A stretch of 57,388 nucleotides of DNA, counting the filler, from Sluysia triapertura (Eukaryota): the NCBI GenBank assembly GCA_046118255.1. It is 4 parts of 4 records of this genome, joined end to end, with 100 filler letters (N's around TTAATTAATTAA, not from the genome) between each part and the next. Parts side by side here need not be neighbours in the genome. Positions count along the whole stretch, not along the records: positions 25,685 to 42,099 come from JBJNIA010204041.1; 3 more parts are not named here. One strand, written 5' to 3'. Below, piece after piece: positions 25,685 to 42,099 of the stretch. Position numbers and translations under genes: made by a program. Under the pieces are notes generated by a model. That model searched no databases. It saw nothing but the letters and a program-made list of their open reading frames with translations, and had not been told where the DNA came from. Each line of letters opens with the position of its first letter. Position 1 is the first letter of the stretch.

Positions 25685-26046
25685 TCACTTATTTAAATTA
25701 TAATATGTTAATGTGAGGTGTAATGCATGTTTATGTTGTGTATATTAAAAGTAAAGGTAGGAAATGAAATTACTATTGATTTTATTATTCTTCAGAGCTT
25801 TGTTGAAAACTAAATATATTAATTGCTGAATACAACAGAACCGAAACAATTTGATAGCATATTCTATAAACATACTCTATTGTAACGTTTTTAATAATTG
25901 CATTTAAATGGAACTTTTAAAATTTCATATTATGTGAATTAAATGCCAAAAACTACAATGCTTTTTGTTTTCTAAATTGAAAAATCAAATATAATTAAGA
26001 CTAAATAATGTAATTAAATAAAAAAAACTAAAATATAAAAATTTAA

Positions 26047-28641
26047 TTAATATCTGGAATTTTTAATTTGATCATTGACAAAATTATCAATCAATAAAGA
26101 GAAAATACTCGTATCGTTATCGTTTTGCATTTGAAATGATTGTTTAGGATTTGCCTTTAGCTTATTTTTTATTACTTTAAAAATTTTAGAACAACGATGT
26201 AACAAATTATGCTTTGGAACCACATTTTTTTGGTTATCATTATCTGGAAATTCATTAAAAGGTTTTAAAGGGCAATTCGTTGATTGATCATCAAATTTAA
26301 AGTATTTAAAACAATTTTGCTTAAATATTGCAATGTCTTGGTTACGATTTGTAAATTCATCAGATGATTCTAAAACACAAGGTATTGTTTCATTGCTAGA
26401 ACAAGTAAAAATTGGGGTTTCTTTTACTATTTCAGATTTTATTATTAACTTTGGAGAATATTTACAAATAGAATTTTCATTACTAGTTAAAAGTAAATTT
26501 GCATTAGAGTACAAACAATTATGGTTAGTATCAATCTCTTCGAAATTATTAATGCACGTGAAATCATTGGTTTCAAATATTGTGTTATTCTTTAATTTTT
26601 TAATGGATATGTTAAAAAACTGTGAATGATTTTCTTTTGTACAATTTTGCTTTATCAATAACTTACCCTTACAATGGAAAAATTTAGAAAGATATTGTTT
26701 TGAATCATTATTATTGTAATGTTGATTATTTTTCATATTAAATAATGTTAGTTTACGACTGTTGAAGCTGTGTACAAGAATTTCACGAAGTGATTTATAG
26801 CTACTTGATATACTTAATGTATTTGAAAACGTTTTTGGTAACTTAAAATTCGATTTTATCGAATATGGTGAAGAAAAATAACTTAAAGATTGTATCGAAG
26901 AATTATCTAATGTGTTTTGATTACGATTATTATTATCATTTTCCGTGCTAGTAGATTCAGAATCAGAATCCTTTGTTCCTTTTGTAGTTTCTTCATCTTT
27001 AGAAGTTTCTTCTTCAGTTTCGTAGGAAATTTTTGTTTTTCTACTTTCACTTGTCATACTAGATGTATAATCTGTTGATGGTTGAGAAATTAAGTTTAAA
27101 TCATTTTTATTTTTATAATTATCTCTACTTTTCATATTGTTTTTGTCTATATCGTTAGCGTACTGTATTTCCGTGTATTCACTTTCTTTACTTGACGTAT
27201 TCGGTGTTTCTTCTATAATTCTCTTAGTAATAGGCATAATTTCTTTTGAACTACTTTTGCTTTTCGTTGAAATAGTAACAGGAATATCTTCCGTAGTATT
27301 TTTTGATATTGCTTTTGCATCTATTGGCACACATGTTGAAATATTTTTATATTTTGATATCAATTCATTCATTTTATCACTGGCATACTTTAAAGCATCT
27401 TCTTCAATACCTTCAGCTGCAAACCAATGCAAACAAACTTTTTTACGAAATAAATTTCCAAATAAATTTACCAATACTGACCAGTTTTGAATTATTGACG
27501 AATGATTTGCTAATACACAAAGCGACCTAATACTATTTTCTGTATCAAAACAAGGATCATAACCAGGCATATTCGTGTTTACAGCTATTTTAAAGTGTGA
27601 CGGTGCCCAATCAACAAAACTTATTCTGGACTTTTCTTTAACTTCTAAAAGAGATCTATGTATAGATGATAATGAACATCCAAAACCTCTGTAAAGACAA
27701 CATGCCGAAAAATAGCAACCTTGCTGATTATTAACTGTAACAGTGAAAGCACTAGAATCAAAACATTGTTTTGTTATTTTAGATAAATTTATTATATTGT
27801 CACAACTTGTGGTAGCGTACGATGCAATTGGAAAATGTACACCTGGGTATGGCACTAGATTAGTTTGATATGTAACAAAATCTGACGATAACTGATTATT
27901 AAATCTATATGGTAATGTGACAGAACTAGCTACTTTTGCAATATGGTGATTTATGTTAGTAAAATTTATCTTTTGCTGTGGATAAATCACTTTATCACAT
28001 GTTTCGTAAAGTGCACTATTATCAACACTAATTACTAAATTCGACGATTCATATAATCCAGTAATGGATAATACAGTATTATATGGTTCAATTAAATTAT
28101 CGACTTTCAAAATAGATGGTATCAAGCTAATATTAATAATAGATGTTTTTTGACATTCCTCACGTATCATTTCGATTATTTTATGAGTTAAACCGGAACC
28201 AGTGCCACCACCTAATGCATGAAAAATAAGAAATCCATTTAAATTGTCAGTTGATTCTAAAGTATATTTAATTGATTGATGTATTTGCTGAACTATTTCT
28301 GAAGCACATGAATGATAACCTTTTGCGAAAATACTCATTGCATCACTTTTACCATTAACAAGTAGCGCTTGATCGAACATACAACGACCAATACCGGTTT
28401 TAATATCATCGATGACTAAAGGTTCGGAATCAATCATAATTGCTCGTGGTTTGTATTTTCCGCTACAATATTTCGTATAGAGTGACTTGGTATTATCTTT
28501 TAAAGGCCAAGGACAAAAACAAATCGATTCACCTTCAATAGTTAATTCATGTTCTATTCTAAACAATTCCCAAACTGCACTACCAATTTGTAATCCTGCT
28601 TGACCAACATGAATACAAATAATTTCACGAAAATCTCCCAT
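26047..28641 (-). CDS. Divergent alpha-tubulin-like protein with ~430-aa C-terminal extension (864 aa, intronless)
   Basis: Motifs [61 protein letters not shown]..FK and HWF..EGIEE. The uninterrupted ORF continues into S/T/E-rich and then K/N/C-rich sequence. Confidence 0.92.
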   Translation of the reverse strand: [864 protein letters not shown]

Positions 28642-28740
28642 TTTTTTCTAATTATGATACCTTTTTTTGCATTGATTAAATAAAATAATTAATAATAATA
28701 ATTTTATTAAATAATTTAAAATATTTTACGTTGAAACTAG

Positions 28741-28903
28741 TGTTAGACTTCATAAAATGAACTGACCGGGGATCGAACCCGGGACCTCTACCCACTGAGC
28801 TGTCAGCCCCATCTAAAAATTTTATTTTATTATAGTAAATTTTACCCAATGACACGTTAGGCCAATTCAATTATGTTTGACCTCAAACATCCTATAAATC
28901 ATT
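28741..28903 (-). mobile_element. tRNA-containing LTR-like unit plus internal segment (TRIM-like family), copy A; anticodon arm deleted
   Basis: Reverse complement: ATGTTTGAGGTCAAACAT...GGCCTAACGTGTCA...TTTTAGAT GGGGCTGACAGCTCAGTGGGTAGAG|GTCCCGGGTTCGATCCCCGGTCAGTTCATTTTATGAAGTCTAACA. Confidence 0.8.
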
Positions 28904-30154
28904 TTTTATTTAAACAAAATAGTTTGTAATTCTTAAAAACATTCACTTTTAATACTTCCAACCACTTAAATTATAACATTAAAGTATACCATGAAGCACC
29001 CAAAAAACGCTTGATTTTGTCTCATTAGTACCACATAATTATTAAATAACTAGCATAATCTTTAATCATAATCGACTTAAGTTACAAATTAATTCCATAA
29101 ATTTACGGCATTACTCATAAAAGCATATTCGCATCAAGCCATTCAAATATAGTGTTCTTATAAACTATCCACTTTTATAGCTTCTAAGTAGAACCTACTT
29201 GTTAAACTTAAAATAATTAGTAACATAAGTAATTAAGTTTTACAGATGTAGTTCTTTATATTTAGTATTTAGTAACTTATTTAATCGCTAAAATATATTA
29301 GTTTTAGTTATAATTATATTAATGAATAAATAATATTATAACAATAATGATAAAAATTGATATACTTACAAATGTAAATATGATATTAATATTATTTATT
29401 GCTGTTTTCATTCTCATACTCATTATGTATATTATTATTAATATTATCATATTTTATAATCATCATTTTCATAATTTAATCATTAATATACTAATCTCAT
29501 CATCATCATCTTCTTCTTCAACATTATAGTCATACATCCACTATTATCATCGTGCACTGTTATTTTGTGCCTTTATTTAAAATTATATTTGAATCTCGAT
29601 ATATTTTCAACAATCATAAAACAAAGTATAAATATACTTTAATCACTATAAATTAGTGTGTTTACACAATCAAATAACACAATATGATACAAAAAGTCCA
29701 TGGATAACACAACGCGTAGAATGATAATGCCTGCATTTGTCTCGCCTTGAACATAACTAATGACAATAGAGCAATAACAAATCAATTTAATTTGAAGAAT
29801 CTCAATAAATTTAAGAATTACAAAATTCAATGCAAATTATCACAATTTTTCTTATTTTAACACTGATACTATTAAAATCGAAATAATATGTCTTTAATTT
29901 AAATTATTAACAATAGCTCAATAATTTAATTATCACATTATTCTGTTTTTATTCTAACAATGATATTTATTAAATCAAAAGATACAACTCCAAATCTATT
30001 GAAAAATACAACAGTACGTTATCAAAAAATTTAGCAAATACCCAAAGAAAAATTATTAGGTATCAGTAAATCAGATAATAATTAACAAAAAAGTTACAGC
30101 AACACAAAAATTCAATTATTATTTATTCAGGATGATTAATGAAAGAGAACTCCT

Positions 30155-30645
30155 GTGGGGGTAAAAAAAGGCCTAAGGTGCCATTTGGTAAAATTTAAAA
30201 TAATAAAATAAAACTGTTAGACGGGATTGACTAGAAGGTCCCTGAATAGAAGAAAGAAGATTACCTTCTCTAAAAAAAGAGAAAGAAGAGACTAAAACTA
30301 TTATATTAATACTTGTTTTTTTAATCATCGAACTGCGCAGCGAGAGGTCCCGGGTTCGATCCTCGGTCAGTCCATTTTATGAAGTCTAACATTTTGTGAG
30401 CCCACATATCGAATACCCTTCTGATATTGGAATTAATGATTTATATGATGTTTGAAGACAAACATAATTGAATTGGGTGAGATATGTTGGGGTAAAAGGC
30501 CTAAAACGTGCCAAGTAGTATAATTGAATAAATAAAAAAATGAAATTGTTAGACGGGGCTGATAGCTCAGTGGTAGAGCAGTCGGACAGCGCAGACGATG
30601 GTCCCGGGTTCGATCCCCGGTCAGTCCATTTTACGAAGTCTAACA
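30155..30645 (+). mobile_element. Tandem tRNA-containing TRIM-like array: internal - LTR (disrupted, 30215-30391) - 155-bp internal - LTR (30547-30645)
   Basis: TGTTAGAC at 30215 and 30547; GTCTAACA at 30384-30391 and 30638-30645. The block GGGGTAAAA(AA)GGCCTAA..GTGCCA precedes both LTR starts. Confidence 0.7.
30556..30628 (+). pseudogene. tRNA-Ala-like sequence (pseudo-tRNA within LTR-like unit)
   Basis: Acceptor stem GGGCTGA/TCAGTCC with G3-U70 and discriminator A. D arm GCTC-AGTGGTA-GAGC (A box), T arm CCGGG-TTCGATC-CCCGG (B box), T4 run at 30629-30632. The anticodon stem does not pair canonically. Confidence 0.8.
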
Positions 30646-31462
30646 TTGTTATTAAAAGAAGTTTTATACTAGATTATAAATATAAGTAAATTAGGATGCT
30701 GTATTTTTATGTCTGTTTGTATAATGCCAATTGTGATATTAAATTATGATAAGATTCTTTTAAAGAGATATGGGTTTGTTCTTCACAAAACTCATTATCT
30801 TCAGATAATTGTCATGGCAATCTAAAGTCGGAAATTCATTGGAAATTAATATTGAAATTCCATTTTAGTAACGAGTCAGCATAAAACTGATTCTAAGAAA
30901 ATAGCGTGTGCAGTAAACATGCAAAATAAATGAATTGAATTCCCCACTATCTGACAATTATCTGGATACTATATAAAGAGCTGACTTCATACATAAAACA
31001 CGACAACAATATAATCCAAAAAAAGCGACAACAGTAACTGTCGACAAATTAGTCAGGAACTTCTTGCTATAGGGACGCTGGATTCAACTGAGTTGCGGAT
31101 AACGCTCATTGAATCTTTTTCTTCAGCAATAACATTAAGACAAAATAAGTTTACGTGGTTAGTAGAGACTTAAGATTCATTTTGTTTTTATTATTATTTT
31201 ATATTTTATTTGTGGTAGCAACATTTATGTTGTGTAACCCCTGCGAGTTTTAAAGAGTTAAACAATAATTTATTAAAGAATTTGATTAACTATATAAAAA
31301 TTTTGATTTATATAACTATAATTGTGATATAAAGAATAGTTATATAAAGATTTGATTTGTATAATTGTTATATAAGAATATATCGATATTTAGTTTTATT
31401 TGATTTTTTCTTAGTTATTAAAGAGGGATATTAGTAAACGGATAAACACAACAAATAGAAGA

Positions 31463-31575
31463 TGTTAGACTTACCGGGAATCGAACCCGGGATCTCTCGC
31501 TTCATAGCTATTCAGTTCGATAAATTGAATTTAAAACTTTTATTTCACAACAAAAACAAGTACATGCATTAATAG
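31463..31575 (-). mobile_element. tRNA-containing LTR-like unit, truncated copy
   Basis: Reverse complement ...TACTTGTTTTT...ATCGAACTG...AGCGAGAGATCCCGGGTTCGATTCCCGGTAAGTCTAACA. Shares its upstream sequence with the 30305-30391 copy. Confidence 0.7.
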
Positions 31576-32179
31576 GATATATAATCAAATAATATGGTAT
31601 AATTAAATTAATAAAGGATCACATTTATATAATAAGTAGTGAATGTAATAAAGCTGGTACTGATAAATTGTCCATTTAAGAAATTGTTGCTCGTTCTGCT
31701 GTTGTCACTTGTGCTGCTGATGATAAGAAAAATTTTAGTAATTGTTGTTGAAGTATAGGACCACAAGCACACCATTGATAATTCAGAAAAAGCAAACATT
31801 CTACATACATATAATGAGATAGGTGAAAGTGAAAAGGATAGAAAGAATGATATGAAATCACAATCATACCAATGATAAATCACATACAATTAAGTGGGTA
31901 AAATAAAGAAACGAGAATATAGGCAAATAAAGAAGGAAAAAATAAAAATAAAAGAATAGAAGAAAGAAATAAAACAAGAATACAAAATGAAATGAAGAAG
32001 GAGGAAATGAAAATGAAAATGAAGATGTAAAAGAGAATATCAGTTGTTGTATAATAGATTGATTATTTAGGAAGACTTAATTCCCCAAAACAAAAGATTA
32101 AAGATTAAAATGATAAACAAAAGCGTTAATTGATTAAGTCCCAAGATTAAGTCACATGATGCAACAATATTATTTATGT

Positions 32180-33440
32180 GGGATATTGGAGGGAGTTTAG
32201 TGAATGGCGCGCTAAACCAGTAATATCGGCCCTACGGAAGCCTAGCTTTTCAGGATCCCAAGAACCAAGTGCTCTAAATGTTTACGTGTCAATGGAAACC
32301 TGACATTTACGTTGTATTTGGAGCTTATCTTTCGAGTCGGAATATTTCGTAATATTGAAAGTTCTGGCCGCCTTAATTTTCTCATAATCATCAATCTGCG
32401 ACTTGACGTCGATGAAAAAATGTTGGGAGGAATTGACACCTTGCGCTTGTACATCAGGTCTTCGATAGTAACCAGTAATGGGGTTTGCGTATCCATTTTG
32501 ACTAAGAAACCCATTTGTTTAGGTTTACTATGTAAACATATGAGAATCGTGTTGTGTGACTATACGGCCAATGATAGTTTGAAGGCAATTGTTTCCTGTT
32601 CAAAGCCACACTAGCGACACGTAATGGGGAGATGCAGTCGAGTGTTTTGTGGAGAGAAATTAAGATTAAAAGTATTAATCCTGTGGTAGCCAATCCATTG
32701 CTTTAGAGTTTTTAGATAAATTTTTAGATAACATAAAACAAACGAATGGCTTAGTAAGTATCAAAATATTAGGGCACAGCCGCGTGAAACAATTCATACA
32801 TTCCGATTATTAATCTGTCGTCGCCGTTTTAAGTAAGATTGTATTAGGCATCCATACAGATCATCAATTTCAATGTATAATAAGCCATCCTATTGTCATG
32901 CAGTTATAGTTATCAATGAACCTTTTATAAATCGTAAGGATACAAGAATATCAAATAAACAAATAAGTGAAGCTCGCGAATTATTAGAAAAAATTCAAGG
33001 ATTATCGATGAAAGTCGGACTGCGACACGAAATTGTATTGATACATAACGAAAATAAAATTGTGATTGTGAAATGAAGTTAAATACTATGTCCGAGATCA
33101 TAGATTTTCTTAGTTGGATGCCAGACTTGACAAATCATCATCGTATGATCCACGAACTGGTAGTTCCCGCTTACAATGCCAAAGAACATGACGCCAGAGT
33201 TATACGAGTTGTTTTGGAGTTTAAAAGGGAATGGGGCATTTGGAATAAAAGTGACGCGTTGTATGTTCAGAAGGAAACAAATCTGCTGGCTGAGGCTCTT
33301 CCCTGTAGAGTTTGTATTTGGATCAAAAGTATTGGGAGGGGATTCAGTATATAGGCACTGTCATCATTAACATCAATGACAAGAAGGAAAAATGGTTTCT
33401 AAGACGGAGGATTGCACATAATGTAGGTTTTTGTGGTTTT
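32180..33440 (-). mobile_element. Decayed RLE-type non-LTR retrotransposon (NeSL/Utopia/R2-like): RT remnants, CCHC finger and restriction-like endonuclease
   Basis: Minus strand reads QWIGYHRIN, CR*CGFEQETI (32590-32620), IGRIVTQHDS, RRPDV, FFIDVK, KAAR....KY and ALGSWDP (32253-32273). Upstream are F.LVID and Y..SGVMF RT-like remnants. Confidence 0.8.
32945..33025 (+). mobile_element. Small RTE-like reverse transcriptase fragment nested in the RLE element
   Basis: ISNKQISEARELLEKIQGLSMKVGL resembles the post-YADD segment (LL..+...+..VGL.IN) of RTE-clade RT. Confidence 0.4.
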
Positions 33441-34136
33441 TACTGATACTTAAAGCTAAACCTGCGGTAAAATAGAAAAGTGAGCAGGGTTCGGTTACAG
33501 TAAGCGTCTCATGTCGTAGAGACGGCACTTCTGTAACAATATAAGTTAAGTAAAACACATTATCTTAAACTGGCAATGTAAATATGAGAATGTCAAAAAT
33601 ATAATAATGCAATGCTCAATTTATTATGTAACAAATAAATACACAAAACGTTTAATTAAAATTTTATTACAATCACAAAAATTAAATAACTTATATTACT
33701 TACGAGACAAAGATGTAAAGAGAGAAAAGCAGAAATTAAAAATTTTATTTCATAGTTGAAACTCCATTAAGTATTTAACTTCTGTAATTGTATTTTGCAC
33801 TGTATTTTTCCCCTCAATATATCGGGAAACCTTAAAGTTTACTATGTGAAATATTAATTTAAGCATATTTTAAGATATTAGCTTCCTTAGATGAAGTTAA
33901 TATCAATCTTAAAATAAACAAATTACTTGGAGCATGGATTTTAAATCGGATATTGTTTGTTAGTTCCAAATCGTCTATCAAATAAAATTCCAAAGATGAC
34001 CGTGAGTTGATTGCAACTGCTTTAACTATCAACTGGCTTTGTCAATATAAATATCAAAATGATGTTAATTTTAAAATGGCGATTTTCATTGTATTGATGC
34101 TAGCTTAGATACTAGTCATCATCCAATGAAAATCGA

Positions 34137-34176
34137 TGAATGTTCTAGAATATTCTAGAACATTATAGAAGCTTCT
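34137..34176. promoter_or_regulatory. Heat-shock-element-like array of 8 alternating nGAAn/nTTCn pentamers
   Basis: GAAtgTTCtaGAAtaTTCtaGAAcaTTAtaGAAgcTTC; 7 of 8 pentamers are perfect. Confidence 0.6.
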
Positions 34177-37100
34177 ATTCTATTTTTAGAAATTTTATTT
34201 TCTTTTTTGGAAACATTTTCTATTACTTTAATTAATTTTTTGATAATTTTAAATAGTTTTAAATAATTTTAAGGCTCCATTATGACATTTTAAAATTATT
34301 TTGTAGGGTTGTGATGACAACTTAACATCATAATCTATTGTAATAACAATTTATTAAATTATTAAATTTATTTAATTGTTTAATTGAATCTATTTTCTAT
34401 TTTAATTGAATCATGCAAGAATTCGTTACGCATTTAATAAAAAACGAATACTAATAAGCACAAATAAATACTAACTAGCATGGCGGATATAAATGAATAA
34501 ATGTTTATAGTTAGAATTACACAACCAAAACAGTAATGCGTAATTAAGTTATATAAAGAAAACTAGCTATAATATAATATAAGACTCGATGAATTATTGC
34601 AGAATTAAACTGGTTAAGTAGTAAATTTTATATTAAAAGGAAATTAATTGTAACGAAGATGCTGTAAATGTGAAATATATAAACACAAGAATTTTCGAGA
34701 AATATCATTAACATTATTAAACAATAATGTGAACATTATTTAACTTTTGAAAGCTGTTAATATTGATAATGTTGTAAAATCGGTGTTTTTAATTTAAATG
34801 TTTATGTTAATATATTTTGCTAATTAAGTCATTTTTTCTTGTTTTCCATCGATAGGAAAGCGAATAAAAAATGTGAACTTGTTTATAAACTGCACTTCTG
34901 TGTCTATCAAACAAGAAAAATGTCAACATTACTTTAGTTTAAAGTGTAACTAAACAATTTAGAATTATTTTGACAATTTTTATAAACTAATACAAAGCGA
35001 ATAAAGAATATCAAACAGTTAGTTAAAACTAAAATTAATACAACTAAAAATTTCATAAAATATGAAATGATAGGCTCAGATAACAGGTAACAAGACAAGA
35101 TATGTATAACTAATCCTATCAATGTAAAAGATTAATTGTAAAATAATTGTAATAATTAAATAATAATTAAATAATTGTAAAATATTAATAACAAATAGAA
35201 ATAATTATATTTAAAATAAAATAAATAATTATAATATGAACAGAGCCCAGCAAATAATATTAAGGGTGTTACAGCTATACATTTCTTTTAATAAAATAAA
35301 TAATAAATTTGAAAATTATTATATAAGCATTACAAAATTCGAAGAGAATTATTGCAAAGTTTTACAATTTGAAATTTGTTTTATAAAATTTTCGAAAATA
35401 AATTCATTAATACAGTATTGAATCACTAGATACGATATTGTTTGTGTTATACGGTCTTTTGAATTAATCGGTATCAATTTTGATTGATCACTATTCGTAG
35501 TTGTTTTTATCCTCGGTTCTCGCTATCACTAAATCAGATTTGAGTATACATCGATCATATCATAAGGTAGTTTAAACTTTTGTATTAAAGTAATATAATA
35601 AATTATACTTTTATATTGTATATTATTTCTTATTTTGTTATTAGTCTTAGAAATATTTAATTTTATTACATTTTTACGAATTTATTTTATTTCTTTTTGA
35701 AAACCAATAATTAGGTATACATAAAATAAATAGTAAAGTTTGAATCGAAATCTCCGTGCAAGTTTATAAAAAGTAATTAGATATTCATTTTAAAGATTAG
35801 AGAGAAATGATAAAGTCGACCTGAAGGTATTATATAGTGAAAGATAAAGGATCTCCAATTAGATATAGATAAAAGGGAAGGAAAAACTGTGTTGGGTCGG
35901 TTTTCGCTTATGATTTTTTGTCACTAACGCGACATCCCTATGTGGAACTTAACCTTGATTACACACCATAAGATATTCCATATGTTCCACTAACGTCACT
36001 GATATACACAAAATTTCATTTCGAACACACTAAAAAGAAATATGCTTGACATGCACCATTAAGTATTACCAAATGGACTCCCACAATCTCATTACCAAAA
36101 CAAGTGTAGATTATTACTTTTATTTAATGCTATTGTTAAGTTGTAATCTCTTTAAGATATCAAAATTAATTGATCTCGTGATTATTATTGTCATTATTCG
36201 CACTGTTAGTCCGATCATGGAGACTTAATGTAATAAATTTTTTTATAAAATTTTTAATGATTTATATAATTTACAAGATTAGTAGTTCATATAGTTCGAA
36301 AATTTCCACACAATGGTACAAATAGTTTGAATGGCTGTACAGGCAATTATGCGAAAAATATCCTTGCATTGTCATTCCACCTCTTCCGAAACTTAAAGTT
36401 GTCGGTCGTTTCGAAGATGAATTTGTGATTGGTTGTCAGAAATGGTTAGTGTACATTGTTCGACATTCGAGTAAAAACGATACTCACAATGTTATAAAAA
36501 AATAACAATTAGTCTTCGGAAAATTAAAATTCCAAGAGGAAAAAGTTTGATTCATTCTGATATGGGCAATACGAAGAGGAATTTTTCGCGAACCTGAAAA
36601 ATTAAATACACGTAGCAATAATGGATATGAAACATAATCGTCTAAATATTGATTAATGCCTGATTTGAATTAAAAAATCAACTACAATCAAAGTACTATA
36701 AAATTAAACATTCATTCTAATGCAATTGAGTTACGTAAACCGTTATTTCATTTTGAATCATTAAATATTTTTGTTGTAAGTATAACAAATATATTAGAAT
36801 TACATGACAATTTTAATTTTGCTATTGTACAGTTACTGATGCAAAAAATAGAATTAAAAATATATTAGAAAATAATAGTCAATGTAAATAAAGGTAAATT
36901 AAAAGAAAAAGGATATTTTAGTTCCTCAAAACCATCAAAACATTCTTTAAAATGCTCTAGTAAAAATGTTTCTAATATTAATGTTGGGATTGCCCAACTG
37001 AGGATCTGGAGAGGAATGAACATAAGTAAAATCATAAAATGAGGGAAAAACTGGTACACGTTGATGGATTTTTATCTAAAGAAATAACAAAACTAAATTT

Positions 37101-37193
37101 GCTAGCTATTTTATTTGCATTAGAATTATTATTATTGCTAATATTATTATTATCATTATTATTAACTAGGAATAAAACTTTAAAAGGACTTAC

Positions 37194-37628
<435 letters not shown>

Positions 37629-38303
37629 CTAAAAGGTAATTATTAAAAAAATAATTATTAACATTTAAGAAATTATTAACATTAATAATTATTAACATTT
37701 AACAAATACTTAGGTTTTGTCTTGATAATGTTTTCTGAAGTGTATTACACAACTTTTATTGTTATAAATTTTGCTTATCTTCCTAAAACTGTTACAAGAA
37801 TGTTGTGTCTAACAATATTGAACTTGATTTAGTAATAATATACTTGGTTGGTTCCAAAACATTAATTCAACAGATTTTATTCCAAATTTCAAGTTTAAGT
37901 ACGCTTCTTCGTATCAAAGATGTTCATGTTGAGAAAGTTGACATGTTCACTTAATTACGCAACATAGAAAGGATTTTTGCAATTATTTTTAGTGATTCGT
38001 GCAAACAATAAGGAATTTTAAAGTAAAAAAATTCAAATTTCATAACACTATGCATATAATAATATTTTTAAAACATACCAAGCACATTTTGCCATTACTT
38101 ACATTGTAAACAATACGAATTACATGCAAATAAAAAAAAACAATTCGTATTTTCTACTTTTGCCTTTTCGAATCATTGAATCGAAATTATTGGATCTAAC
38201 TTCGTAAGATTGCGTATTTGAAAAAACAAAATGAGGCAATGCTTATATTTATTTCAACATTCGTAAATTCATCTTACACCACTCACACACTCACGCACAC
38301 CAA

Positions 38304-38515
38304 TCAATGTTCAGATAATCTTGATGAAATAATAGGAGGAGAATAAAGGTTCTGTTGGTTTAAAATTGAAGAATCGGACTGCAAAAAATGATCGTAAGAA
38401 TTATTATCATTAACAATTTCAACATTTAGATTATTGTAATCTACTTCTGGTGCTGGTGCTGTAGACTTAGTTACTGTTTCTGTTACTTCGTCACTGATTT
38501 CTGAAGATATGTCGT
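38304..38515 (-). other. Unassigned exon-like ORF segment (S/T/E/N-rich)
   Basis: TTTTAG acceptor at 38516-38517 and an open frame DISSEISDEVTETVTKSTAPAPE...SRLSEH*. No recognisable domain. Confidence 0.35.
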
Positions 38516-38906
38516 CTAAAATGCACAAAATAAAGAGTTTTAATTAATCTAACAGAGTCAGAAAAAACTATTAATACAAAATTTACTATGATGAAATAAG
38601 TTGAGCATACAACTGTATTTGAATTTTATTTTATTTGGGCAAAATTTACTATTAAACTCATTGATCGTTTGATCTACTTCTACTATTTCTGGGATACTTT
38701 CTATTTTCAATAAGGTTTTATAAGAACAAATTCTAATTTCCAAATTAAATTCTTTTGGATATTTTATGTAATTTAGATAACTTTACATTTTTGTTTTTCT
38801 TTATCGCATCATTGAAATATAATTTTGATTCATATTTTGCCTATTGAGGCAGGTATAATACAGAAAATTGAATAACCTTTCGTATTAGCATTATATTATC
38901 CATTTG

Positions 38907-39360
38907 TAATATAATAATAATAATAATATATTAATTGATATTGCGCTCATATCTAATGAAAAGTAAGTACTCAAAAGCGCTTAAAATAAATTATTCATTA
39001 TAATATATCTAAAACAAAAACTTTGTGTTTTTCTTAAATATTTCAAAATCTTTCACTAATTTGACATTCTCTGGTAAATGGTTATATATTTTTGAAACAT
39101 AAACAGTGTACAACCTATCACCTAGGTTATTATCACTGTGGATTCTGTATAGATTTATTATTATTATTATTATTATTATCATTATCTCAATGAAATATTT
39201 ATCTTGGTTTCCAAATTTTTTATTACTTCTAAAAAGATATTAAGCACTTCCGAATGTAATCATTTGTAAGTTATTGTCATGATTTTGAATTTTATTCTTG
39301 CTTTTATTGGCAACTAATGTAATTCTTTAAGATAAGGTGTTACACGAGATCTCGCAACTT
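38907..39360 (-). mobile_element. 3' end of an L2-clade LINE
   Basis: VTPYLKELH*LPIKARIKFKIMTITYK*LH, then KIYNHLPENVK....FEIFKKNTKFLF. The 3' UTR AAGCGCTTTTGAG...GAGCGCAATAT is followed by an (ATT)n tail. Confidence 0.85.
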
Positions 39361-39854
39361 GGAGAATATTTCAAATATTTTCCAGTTGAAAATTTTACTA
39401 CCTTAAGTGGAAATGATTTTTATGCAGCTAAGATAATTATTTTTGGTTTACCTCCTCCAGTTTTAAGTAATTCAGTTTTTATAGTAAAATATGAATGATT
39501 TAAATATTTTATTAATATCACTTGGTCATTAATGCATACTTGACCAAGAGCGTGTCACTATTTTCAACGTTAGAATTTAGTTAACACTTGAAATATTCAT
39601 TAAGCATGAGCTTCCACATGTCAGGACGATCAAATAGTTTCCATTTTTGCTTTGGATAATTTTGGGTGATTTAACGTAATATTTTTGAATAAACTCACCT
39701 TTATGTAATGTGGTGAAAATAAACATTAATCAAATTAACATACTAGATATGATTGATTATTATTTTCAGAATCAAAATTTCAAGATTTTCATGAGAACTC
39801 ATTTGAAATTTTCATAATTATTTACTTTAATAATTTACTGTTTCTAAATAATTT

Positions 39855-40952
39855 TTAATTAAAATTACCGATGCTTGTATTGCTTTCTTGGGCCAATTTC
39901 GTTAGGTAATTCACAACATCATCCATATCATCACTATCATCTTCATCACTTATCCTATTGTTGTGATTATGAGCTTTTTTCGTCTTCCGTTTCTTTAACC
40001 AATCTCGAAATACGGATTTGCAATGGTCCATCAGACATTCCGCGGAACAGTAACGAGCTCCATCCCATCTAGTATCCCATACTGCTAATCTGTCGCATCC
40101 TTTCCCGATACATTTATTTTCGTCATTATCTTCCTCTTTCTGCTGGACAGTGTCTTCGTCATCAGACATAATCACACGACGAACTGAAATTCTGGGCGGT
40201 GTATCATCATCACCATTATCATCATCGATATCCACACCTTTGTAACTACTATCTTCATCTTCGTTACTACTCGTATCTGTTAGAGTAGATTTATCATCAC
40301 AATCCTCGATGTCATTATTGTCAACACTATTTCTTTGTTTGTTTTTCAATTTTCTCTGTAATCGACGTTGCTGCTCAACATATTCTAAAATTAAATCACT
40401 ATCGCTGTTCGAAAACGCAGTTAATCCCGGTCGACGATAAGCAAATACCGAATGACGTCCAGTTTTATCTATAATAAAATTGAAATAACATTATACTTGT
40501 AATAATTAAAATTTAAATAAATCAGTTGTAAAGTATTTTGGTTTTATAGAAACGGATTACTTTTAAAACATATTTCTAAACACCGCCAACATTTTAAAAT
40601 ACATGTAAGTAAAATAGATTAGAACAAGTTATCCGATTTAAAAATCGACCCAATACAAATTACAGATGCACTAATAAACCGTACTATCCAACTGGAAATT
40701 TTGTAGCTGATTCTGTGACTGTGATTTTTGTTTATAAAGCTTGGAATTATTTTGATGATAAACACTTGCACTTCCTGCGAGTGACTTTAGTCGTGCAGGT
40801 ATTTCAGGTTCAGATGAAGATACTGAAGTTGTTTTGGAAAGCTGATTGGTGATTTCATTTTCTTTAGATTTCGATTTCTTGTTACTTACCGAAGAACCCG
40901 TGTTTATTAGCTTTGATGGGGCCGAAGTGTACACTGAACCAGGTATTGTAAT
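39855..40952 (-). CDS. TOX4: TOX4-like protein, 3' exons (approx. 40685-40952 and 39855-40468); 5' part unresolved
   Basis: KCIGKGCDRLAVWDTRWDGARYCSAECLMDHCKSVFRDW matches the TOX4 C-terminal Cys/His domain (C.RSGC.NP...[22 protein letters not shown].AW). AG acceptors at 40469-40470 and 40953-40954 keep the frame with a GTACGG donor. Confidence 0.72.
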
Positions 40953-42099
40953 CTTAAATAAAAAATAATAGTATCTAAAAATTGAATCCCTTAAATTTGA
41001 ATAATTCATATTATAAATTATCAGAAAACAAGTTTAAGGTATTAATTGATACCTTCTGGGGGAGCAATTTTTTGGCGTGAACATTAATACTAAATTATGA
41101 ACATTATGTTGTAATATTCAATTTAAACTAGACGAATTTCTTCAATAAAATATTTATTTATACTTTCTTCTAAAGATCTCGCGGTCCGGAGAAACTTTTC
41201 AAGGTCCGCAACTGGCTAGATCATTGGTGTTCACACCTCCATTTTGAAGAGCACTGAATAAGGTGACTCAGACCAATAAATGTCTTAGAAGTAAATGATA
41301 TTAAGTTTATAAGCCTTAATCTTACCAATGCAATTATTATTACACACGATCCATCAAACAAACAGTAAAATACGTTGGAGTAATTGGTTGCTATAAAAGA
41401 CTCACTTGTCAGTCTATACAGATATCGATGATTTCAATCAATTAGCAGTAGAAGTAGATTAACGTTGCATGAATTTCCAAATATGATTTAAATGGTAATT
41501 ATACTTATATTACTTACAACATTCGTTTAAATAAATGCTTATTAAAATTGATGTTTTAGCATTTTGATTATTGTTTTGTATTCTTTTGCTATTTCAATCA
41601 CAAAAGTAATAATTTACCAAAATCATTTTTTAGCAAGGCTGATGCTGACACAGATACTTTTGCTCATTAAAATTATTTTTGAGATGCCTGGTGTAAGCTC
41701 CAAGCCTAAAAATATGCTTCATCATTATGTTGGAGATAGCCAGAATTGTCCACGCTAAATTCGCTAGCTAAGATAAGCTAAATATTCATGTGGTGAGTTT
41801 AATGCAGAAAGAAAATAAATACCAATGCAAGAATACGCATAAATTTCATAATTTAAAAATTAAAATAAATATTTTATAACATTAAAACCAAAGGAAAAAC
41901 TTCAAAAATGCACTTTTCCAATTGAAATTATCGTTAAATTAAAAATTTTTATTTTTAAATATTGTAAAATAAAATTATTTTAGGGTTATTCATTTTTATA
42001 TAAACCTGTATTCATTTTTATATTAACTAATATTCATTTTTATATTAACATAATTAAGAATGAATAAAAAATATTTCCAAAAATGAAGGTTCTAACTTA

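Follow-up and report, generated by a model that had tools for sequence, protein, structure and literature searches.

The DNA window analysed here is a stretch of 57,388 nucleotides (nt) from Sluysia triapertura (assembly GCA_046118255.1), in which positions 25685-42099 come from the record JBJNIA010204041.1; all coordinates refer to the whole stretch. This piece is AT-rich (guanine-cytosine (GC) content of 0.21-0.37) and carries, on the minus strand, a gene for a divergent alpha-tubulin with Thr in place of the catalytic Glu254. An earlier, sequence-only reading had placed this gene at 27400-28641. The tubulin domain is indeed located there, but the same open reading frame (ORF) runs on to position 26047, and a C-terminal tail of 427 amino acids (aa) was therefore missed (the product has 864 aa, and not ~445 aa). 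ORF calling and the comparison of reading frames defined a complete, single-exon coding sequence (26047-28641) of 864 codons followed by a TAA stop, with the ATG at 28639-28641 and an in-frame TAG three codons 5′ of it. Its parts, all given below on the minus strand, are an alpha-tubulin domain (27331-28641; aa 1-437), recognized with Pfam, PDB matches, AlphaFold2 (AF2), Foldseek and a phylogenetic tree, and a Ser/Asn/Lys-rich C-terminal extension (26050-27330; aa 438-864) without a Pfam domain or a confidently predicted fold. The frame was correctly described as unbroken: it contains no internal stop codons, and a read-derived contig of 2770 nt from a public run (which may derive from the same sample as the assembly) spans 25998-28767 without a single difference or gap relative to the window. 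The identity of this one contig argues that the tubulin ORF is not an assembly slip.

The product of the gene (hereafter the window protein) is a divergent alpha-tubulin paralogue, which has the alpha fold and most residues of the non-exchangeable pocket (N-site) for guanosine triphosphate (GTP). Residues 6-216 match the Pfam family PF00091 (Tubulin; 2.4e-49) and residues 266-389 match PF03953 (Tubulin_C; 2.6e-19), and the best 60 sequence matches in the PDB are all alpha-tubulin chains (E-value of ~1e-89), aligned over residues 5-434. The domain is ~34% identical to canonical alpha-tubulins, a level that points to an old protein. An AF2 model of residues 1-442, based on an alignment of 70 sequences, has a predicted local distance difference test score (pLDDT) of 91.4 and a predicted template modelling score (pTM) of 0.93, and the best 50 Foldseek matches to this model are again alpha-tubulin chains (template modelling (TM) scores of 0.92-0.96). 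In the phylogeny that had been proposed as a check, calculated with a site-heterogeneous model against K254-type outgroups, the window protein with its Thr254 falls into the alpha clade (support of 100/99). The alpha-specific, 8-residue S9-S10 insert is complete in the window protein and in its relatives P0059 and P0130 (introduced below), whereas it is gapped in the outgroup sequences P0245, P0248 and P0263. The tubulin signature GGGTGSG (T4 loop; 28192-28212; aa 144-150) is intact, and the N-site GTP contacts G10, Q11, A12, Q15, D69, E71, D98, A99, G143-146, T145, E183, N206 and N228 are retained, with N101S, S140A, S178V, T179D and Y224F being the altered ones.

In microtubule protofilaments, Glu254 of alpha-tubulin extends into the exchangeable site of the next beta-tubulin below, where it activates the hydrolysis of GTP. 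In the window protein, the T7 loop and helix H8 (27844-27906), with a Thr codon at the Glu254 position (27871-27873), align to canonical alpha-tubulins without gaps in both HMMER and MAFFT alignments. The substitutions E254T, G246N and N249S, which the sequence-only reading had deduced, were reproduced in this way together with D245N and L252F, and D251 is retained. Apart from this Asp, there is no acidic residue near position 254. An acidic residue aligned with, or adjacent to, this position was also looked for in the related proteins P0059, P0130 and P0150, and none was found (Val, Leu and Val at 254, respectively).

The remaining loop changes reported earlier were likewise recovered from the alignments. 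The T3 loop (28318-28350; canonical KEDAANNYARG) contains AMSIFAKG in place of AANNYARG (A100M, N101S, N102I, Y103F and R105K), and four of these substitutions (N101S, N102I, Y103F and R105K) are also present in P0059. The H1-S2 loop, which in canonical proteins carries K40, is replaced by a Cys/Pro/Trp segment with CFCPWPL (28492-28524); the CxCPWPL motif is kept in P0059 (LCYCPWPLVDN), and residues 43-46 of this region have AF2 pLDDT values of <50. The M-loop region (27778-27822) is 5 residues shorter than the canonical one, with the segment around canonical positions 280-284 gone, a deletion that is common to the window protein and P0059 and absent from P0130. The N-terminus is MGDFR(EI) (28627-28641), that is the tetrapeptide is shifted three residues inward relative to MREC/MREI; P0059 starts with MSNREI and P0130 with MSRQTI. 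At the 220 positions that are near-invariant among 26 canonical alpha-tubulins, the canonical residue is kept in 51% of cases by the window protein and in 56% by P0059. For the 35 invariant positions of the GTP-pocket loops the retention in these two proteins is 66-74%, for the longitudinal elements it is 58-67% (T7-H8) and 55-73% (H10), and for the lateral-contact elements (H1-S2, H2-S3, H3 and the M-loop) it is 0-33%. The net charge of the tubulin domain is -4 compared with -23 for canonical alpha-tubulin, and helix H12 is no longer acidic.

Relatives of the window protein were sought with three word-index searches and an exhaustive representative search, which yielded one close protein, P0059 (UniParc UPI0006084C13; 850 aa), and one more distant, P0130 (441 aa). 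P0059 has the same architecture and is 48% identical and 69% similar within the tubulin domain, whereas P0130 lacks a long tail, its sequence stopping directly after H12. Both probably originate from the same proteome, as can be deduced from their UniParc numbers, which are ~7,800 apart. When metagenomes were scanned for subfamily-specific peptides, only canonical alpha-tubulins were recovered, and no contigs matched the exact sequences of the window protein or P0059. Under the site-heterogeneous model, the three proteins form a clade with support of 99/99. They have in common a one-residue insert after YRG and the derived states GSA[IV]WEL, LS[ST]DF, D[ST]E in T2, LNG and HWF, and this insert and these motifs constitute evidence independent of the tree. 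D251 is present in all three, and position 254 is occupied by Thr (window protein), Val (P0059) or Leu (P0130), which argues that Glu254 was lost before the genes split and that its loss has been maintained since. These sequences show a small subfamily, comprising P0059, P0130 and perhaps also P0150, with a non-acidic residue at position 254; on their alignment, the loss is old and preserved. The earlier proposal of a natural alpha-tubulin that lacks the Glu activating the GTPase is supported by both the window protein and this subfamily, which was missed in the sequence-only reading. The same position varies more widely: among 92 near-full-length (420-470 aa) matches of the representative search, mostly divergent alpha-like proteins, ~10 other alpha-like sequences have a non-acidic residue at 254 (e.g. 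Gln in P0177 and P0195, Ser in P0178, Thr in P0230 and His in P0257) and twelve others carry Asp. Loss or weakening of Glu254 seems to recur among divergent alpha paralogues.

The C-terminal tails of the window protein (427 aa, net charge of +4) and of P0059 (414 aa, +7) are both rich in Ser, Asn and Lys. No Pfam domain was matched within residues 440-864, and Smith-Waterman alignment of the two tails gave a score of 72, compared with 76 +/- 11 for shuffled sequences, i.e. no significant similarity. The only short motif common to both is YLSKFF (26677-26694), which corresponds to FLSKFH in a comparable position of the P0059 tail and may be due to chance. The window tail ends in Tyr (...KNSRY) without an acidic context. 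Its AF2 model has a pLDDT of 29.9 and includes a small number of helices, predicted with low confidence, towards the end, and although an alignment of two sequences makes this weak evidence, the prediction is consistent with a disordered tail.

Scanning of the longer matches of the representative search revealed further proteins composed of an alpha-tubulin-like domain and a Pfam-less tail of 140-660 aa. All of those with a named source are from trematodes: Paragonimus westermani (P0149), P. kellicotti, P. heterotremus (P0346), Calicophoron daubneyi (P0159) and Dicrocoelium dendriticum (P0227; four near-identical paralogues). Further members of the long-tailed set are P0179, P0184 (grouped with P0346), P0347-P0349 (grouped with P0227) and P0145 from trematodes, as well as P0150 and P0146, whose UniParc numbers lie in the range of P0059 and P0130 and whose amino-acid composition is typical of AT-rich genomes. 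P0179 is encoded by one uninterrupted ORF of 3141 nt on a Logan contig of 3720 nt (L005), and the Calicophoron gene (L004) occupies 3692 nt for 964 aa and hence has introns. Like the window protein, the trematode proteins have a non-MREC start (MGGEI/MGREI), altered T7 loops and a Pfam-less tail of >140 aa. The named trematode groups differ from it in that they keep Glu254 (within TEL or DEL), have a 2-residue insert in T7 and a full-length M-loop, and come from GC-richer genomes. In a tree of the long-tailed set, only P0150, which reads DFVVL at T7/H8, joins the window clade (Shimodaira-Hasegawa approximate likelihood-ratio test (SH-aLRT) support of 88); the named trematode clades form a polytomy and all of the branches are long. 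No papers describing the trematode long-tailed proteins were found. Judging by these resemblances, the window protein may be part of a larger radiation of alpha-tubulin-like proteins with long tails, not described before. The trematode look-alikes, the composition typical of AT-rich genomes and the neighbouring UniParc numbers of P0059, P0130, P0150 and P0146 would also fit a helminth or flatworm source.

Two explanations would deprive the 864-codon gene, or half of it, of biological meaning, and the evidence speaks against both. One of them assumes that the locus is a decaying or recently dead alpha-tubulin retrocopy, whose long ORF is accidental. It draws on the lack of introns, on the low identity to canonical proteins, including numerous substitutions of residues that are invariant elsewhere, on evolution faster than that of P0059 and on the lack of RNA runs with this sequence. 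However, the tubulin frame has no stops in 864 codons, whereas the other five frames have 35-136; at the local composition (27% GC) ~9% of random codons are stops, which gives P ~1e-35 for a stop-free frame of this length. P0059 keeps its 850-aa architecture at 48% identity, and under neutrality ~25 stop-creating changes would be expected in the domain since the split of the two genes, of which none is seen (P ~2e-11; a rough estimate, which applies to P0059 as an orthologue and as a close paralogue alike). The GC content at third codon positions (GC3) is 0.17-0.18 in both domain and tail, compared with values at the first and second positions (GC1/GC2) of 0.38/0.37 for the domain and 0.28/0.31 for the tail (tail GC3 of 0.18), an asymmetry that argues for coding constraint on both parts. 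The GTP pocket is preferentially conserved and the AF2 model of the domain is confident, which again is not the picture of a dead copy. The locus shows none of the hallmarks of a processed pseudogene, be it disabling stops, frameshifts or neutral change. The explanation as a dead retrocopy is accordingly highly improbable, and the young pseudogene which the sequence-only reading had kept in view is rejected, as the ORF has been maintained over deep divergence. The other explanation leaves the domain untouched and removes the tail from the protein, by stop-loss read-through, an unrecognized intron or an assembly join, so that the true product would have ~440 aa, like P0130, which ends right after H12. 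The lack of a Pfam domain, of a confident fold and of similarity to the P0059 tail would fit this. Nonetheless, a single read-derived contig covers domain and tail without differences, and the tail is free of stops in the tubulin frame only (0 compared with 13-79 in the other frames), with coding-like GC3; a stop-free stretch of 427 codons has a chance probability of ~5e-18, and 0 of 20,000 shuffled sequences were open. Moreover, the tail of P0059 is nearly equal in length and composition, and several trematode alpha-tubulin-like proteins also have long Pfam-less tails. A tail foreign to the protein is likewise highly improbable. By all of these sequence measures, the gene is real and selectively maintained, and not a pseudogene.

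As to what such a protein does, the properties of engineered human tubulins are instructive. Human tubulin carrying E254A, in which D251 is intact, shows no GTP hydrolysis and strong nucleation; its microtubules are stable and GTP-cap-like, and its GTP-locked lattice is hyperstable and binds EB along the whole length, while in E254D tubulin hydrolysis is slowed and catastrophes are suppressed (PMC7018511, Roostalu et al. 2020). On balance, we lean towards the view that the window gene encodes a GTP-binding alpha paralogue that cannot activate hydrolysis and would act as a stabilizer or cap, in a gene that is maintained. The window protein would bind GTP and pair with a beta-tubulin; its T7/H8 face, docked on a GTP-carrying beta-tubulin, would leave hydrolysis untriggered, and it would then act like a naturally encoded E254A, that is as a local stabilizer of the GTP state or as a cap. 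Since both lateral-contact sides (the M-loop on the one hand, H1-S2 and H2-S3 on the other) are remodelled, a sub-stoichiometric or specialized subunit is likelier than a component of the bulk lattice, and the outer surface of H12, which is no longer acidic, would point in the same direction. On the outer surface, the tail would protrude in the manner of a built-in projection domain of a microtubule-associated protein (MAP), and the shifted N-terminus would abolish the MREC/MREI regulatory motif. A role in the germline, which would fit the fast evolution, is speculation. Several points weigh against this view of a stabilizing, maintained subunit. Three of the altered N-site contacts (N101S, S178V and T179D) lie at the nucleotide pocket, and the M-loop deletion with the changed H1-S2, H2-S3 and H3 could prevent incorporation into the lattice altogether. 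The relatives number only two to four, and their grouping, being one of long branches, may be partly artefactual. With P0130 as the outgroup, the window lineage has 47 unique changes compared with 23 in P0059 (p=0.004; no significant difference if the canonical consensus serves as the outgroup), and such faster evolution could reflect relaxed constraint. Finally, one search of public sequencing runs found the Sluysia tubulin sequence in a single DNA-type run and in zero RNA runs.

The most serious competitor is a protein that has the tubulin fold and does not polymerize, serving as a scaffold, as a partner that sequesters or regulates beta-tubulin or as an end-binding poison, with the new function carried by the tail. 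That the lateral-contact elements are the least conserved parts of the domain (the M-loop is shortened by 5 residues, H1-S2 is replaced and H2-S3/H3 retain 0-33%), that the acidity of H12 and of the tail is lost (domain charge of -4 compared with -23) and that a tail as long as the domain is kept in a maintained ORF would all be expected of such a protein. Less easily accommodated are the longitudinal elements, conserved at or above the average (T7-H8 58-67%, H10 55-73%), the retained ..HFP core of T7/H8 and alpha-specific S9-S10 insert, and the CxCPWPL loop conserved between the window protein and P0059, as if a specific contact persisted. We regard a non-polymerizing protein as a tentative alternative with a limited, though appreciable, probability. 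Given the altered lateral-contact loops, a role outside the bulk lattice, or without polymerization, would be at least as plausible as simple stabilization. The bolder extension of the stabilizing reading, namely that of a lineage-specific, possibly flatworm, family of encoded GTP-cap mimics, with a MAP-like projection domain, longitudinal docking without hydrolysis and re-engineered lateral contacts, which would build or cap permanently stable structures (sperm cortical microtubules or atypical axoneme cores), perhaps with a co-evolved beta partner, is unlikely to hold as a whole. Glu254 drives dynamic instability, and a natural lineage that has long been without it shows how stability might be encoded in tubulin itself and not in MAPs; the window protein would be a natural reagent for questions concerning the GTP cap and lattice states. 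Should the link to the long-tailed trematode proteins hold, a radiation of tubulins not yet described would exist in a group with important parasites among its members, in which tubulins serve as drug targets.

The surroundings of the gene contain repeats and further open stretches. Copies of a SINE-like (short interspersed nuclear element), transfer RNA (tRNA)-derived repeat are located at 28741-28903 (minus strand), 30170-30476 (plus strand) and 30530-30647 (plus strand). The first of these has no anticodon arm and precedes the tubulin ATG by 100-260 nt, in the orientation of the gene. The repeat is present in very many copies in this genome: the summed contig depth over 28708-28915 is 66,000-270,000, compared with 16 for the tubulin gene, and >1,300 contigs carry it. 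A tRNA-Arg(GCG) was predicted at 30556-30628 (plus strand) by both ARAGORN and Rfam (50.3 bits), within a copy of the repeat; the 3′ half of the predicted tRNA matches the other copies at 86-96%. GCG is an unusual anticodon for a eukaryotic tRNA-Arg, and the prediction is probably the head of the SINE and not a working tRNA gene. Apart from the tubulin gene, the longest open stretch has 211 codons and is found at 39858-40490 (minus strand). Towards the C-terminus it is rich in Cys and His, and this part, CIGKGCDRLAVWDTRWDGARYCSAECLMDHC, is similar to the TOX4 peptide of PDB 9ci7_B (E-value of 7.5e-6); the stretch is probably, on that match, the last exon of a TOX4-like gene, which the ORFs at 40671-41009 and 38304-38528 (both on the minus strand) may or may not join. 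A weak DUF4786 match of a neighbouring ORF (E-value of 0.005), which would hint at arthropods, was below the cut-off and was not relied on.

Comparison with known tubulins sets the window protein apart in several respects. With canonical alpha-tubulin (TUBA1B; PDB 3j8x_A and 6tis_A) it shares the common fold, GGGTGSG, most of the N-site contacts, the S9-S10 insert and the ..HFP core of T7/H8. It differs in E254T, N249S and N101S/N102I, in the lack of K40, in the M-loop that is 5 residues shorter, in the MGDFREI start, in the non-acidic H12 and in a neutral tail of 427 aa instead of an acidic one of ~12 aa ending in Tyr. Among named full-length alpha-tubulins, the most similar is a mosquito alpha-8-like protein (P0312; 37-40% identity). 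There is a partial likeness to insect isotypes of the alpha4 (alphaTub67C) type, which are fast-evolving, lack K40 and have non-canonical tails; these are alpha isotypes of reproductive tissues with short non-canonical tails (Nielsen et al. 2010, PMC2880298), and nothing resembling the window protein is present among the 66 alpha-tubulins from 19 insect genomes described therein. The insect proteins keep E254, have no long tail and constitute a separate clade. An origin from insect alpha4 was considered and rejected, as the clade of the window protein and that of the alpha4-like proteins stay apart in the trees. The literature search for long-tailed or E254-less alpha-tubulins outside the coccidia found none.

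Two further systems without the canonical Glu254 are the engineered human mutants and the coccidian alpha3 tubulins, the latter being the closest analogue described so far. As in human E254A and E254D, the catalytic Glu is lost in the window protein and D251 is intact. The human mutants, however, carry a single-residue change and polymerize normally, whereas the window protein is also altered in the lateral loops, the N-terminus, the outer surface and the tail, and because of these additional changes E254A-like behaviour cannot be assumed for it. The coccidian alpha3 proteins (Toxoplasma TgTubA3 and homologues) are without D251/E254, may carry a shifted Glu at 253, have an MPREI insert and altered H1-S2 and M loops, and possess an "extraordinarily long" tail of 48 aa, which is little conserved between species; it was argued that the N-terminal insert removes the MREC/MREI regulatory motif, and a role in stabilizing polymers was proposed (PMC10056924). 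By description, the window protein resembles them in the loss of a GTPase-activating residue, in the insertion within the N-terminal MREI motif and in the long, non-conserved tail. In contrast to coccidian alpha3, it keeps D251, has a deletion in the M-loop and carries a tail that is ~9 times longer (~427 compared with 48 aa), and an origin independent of the coccidian proteins seems likely.

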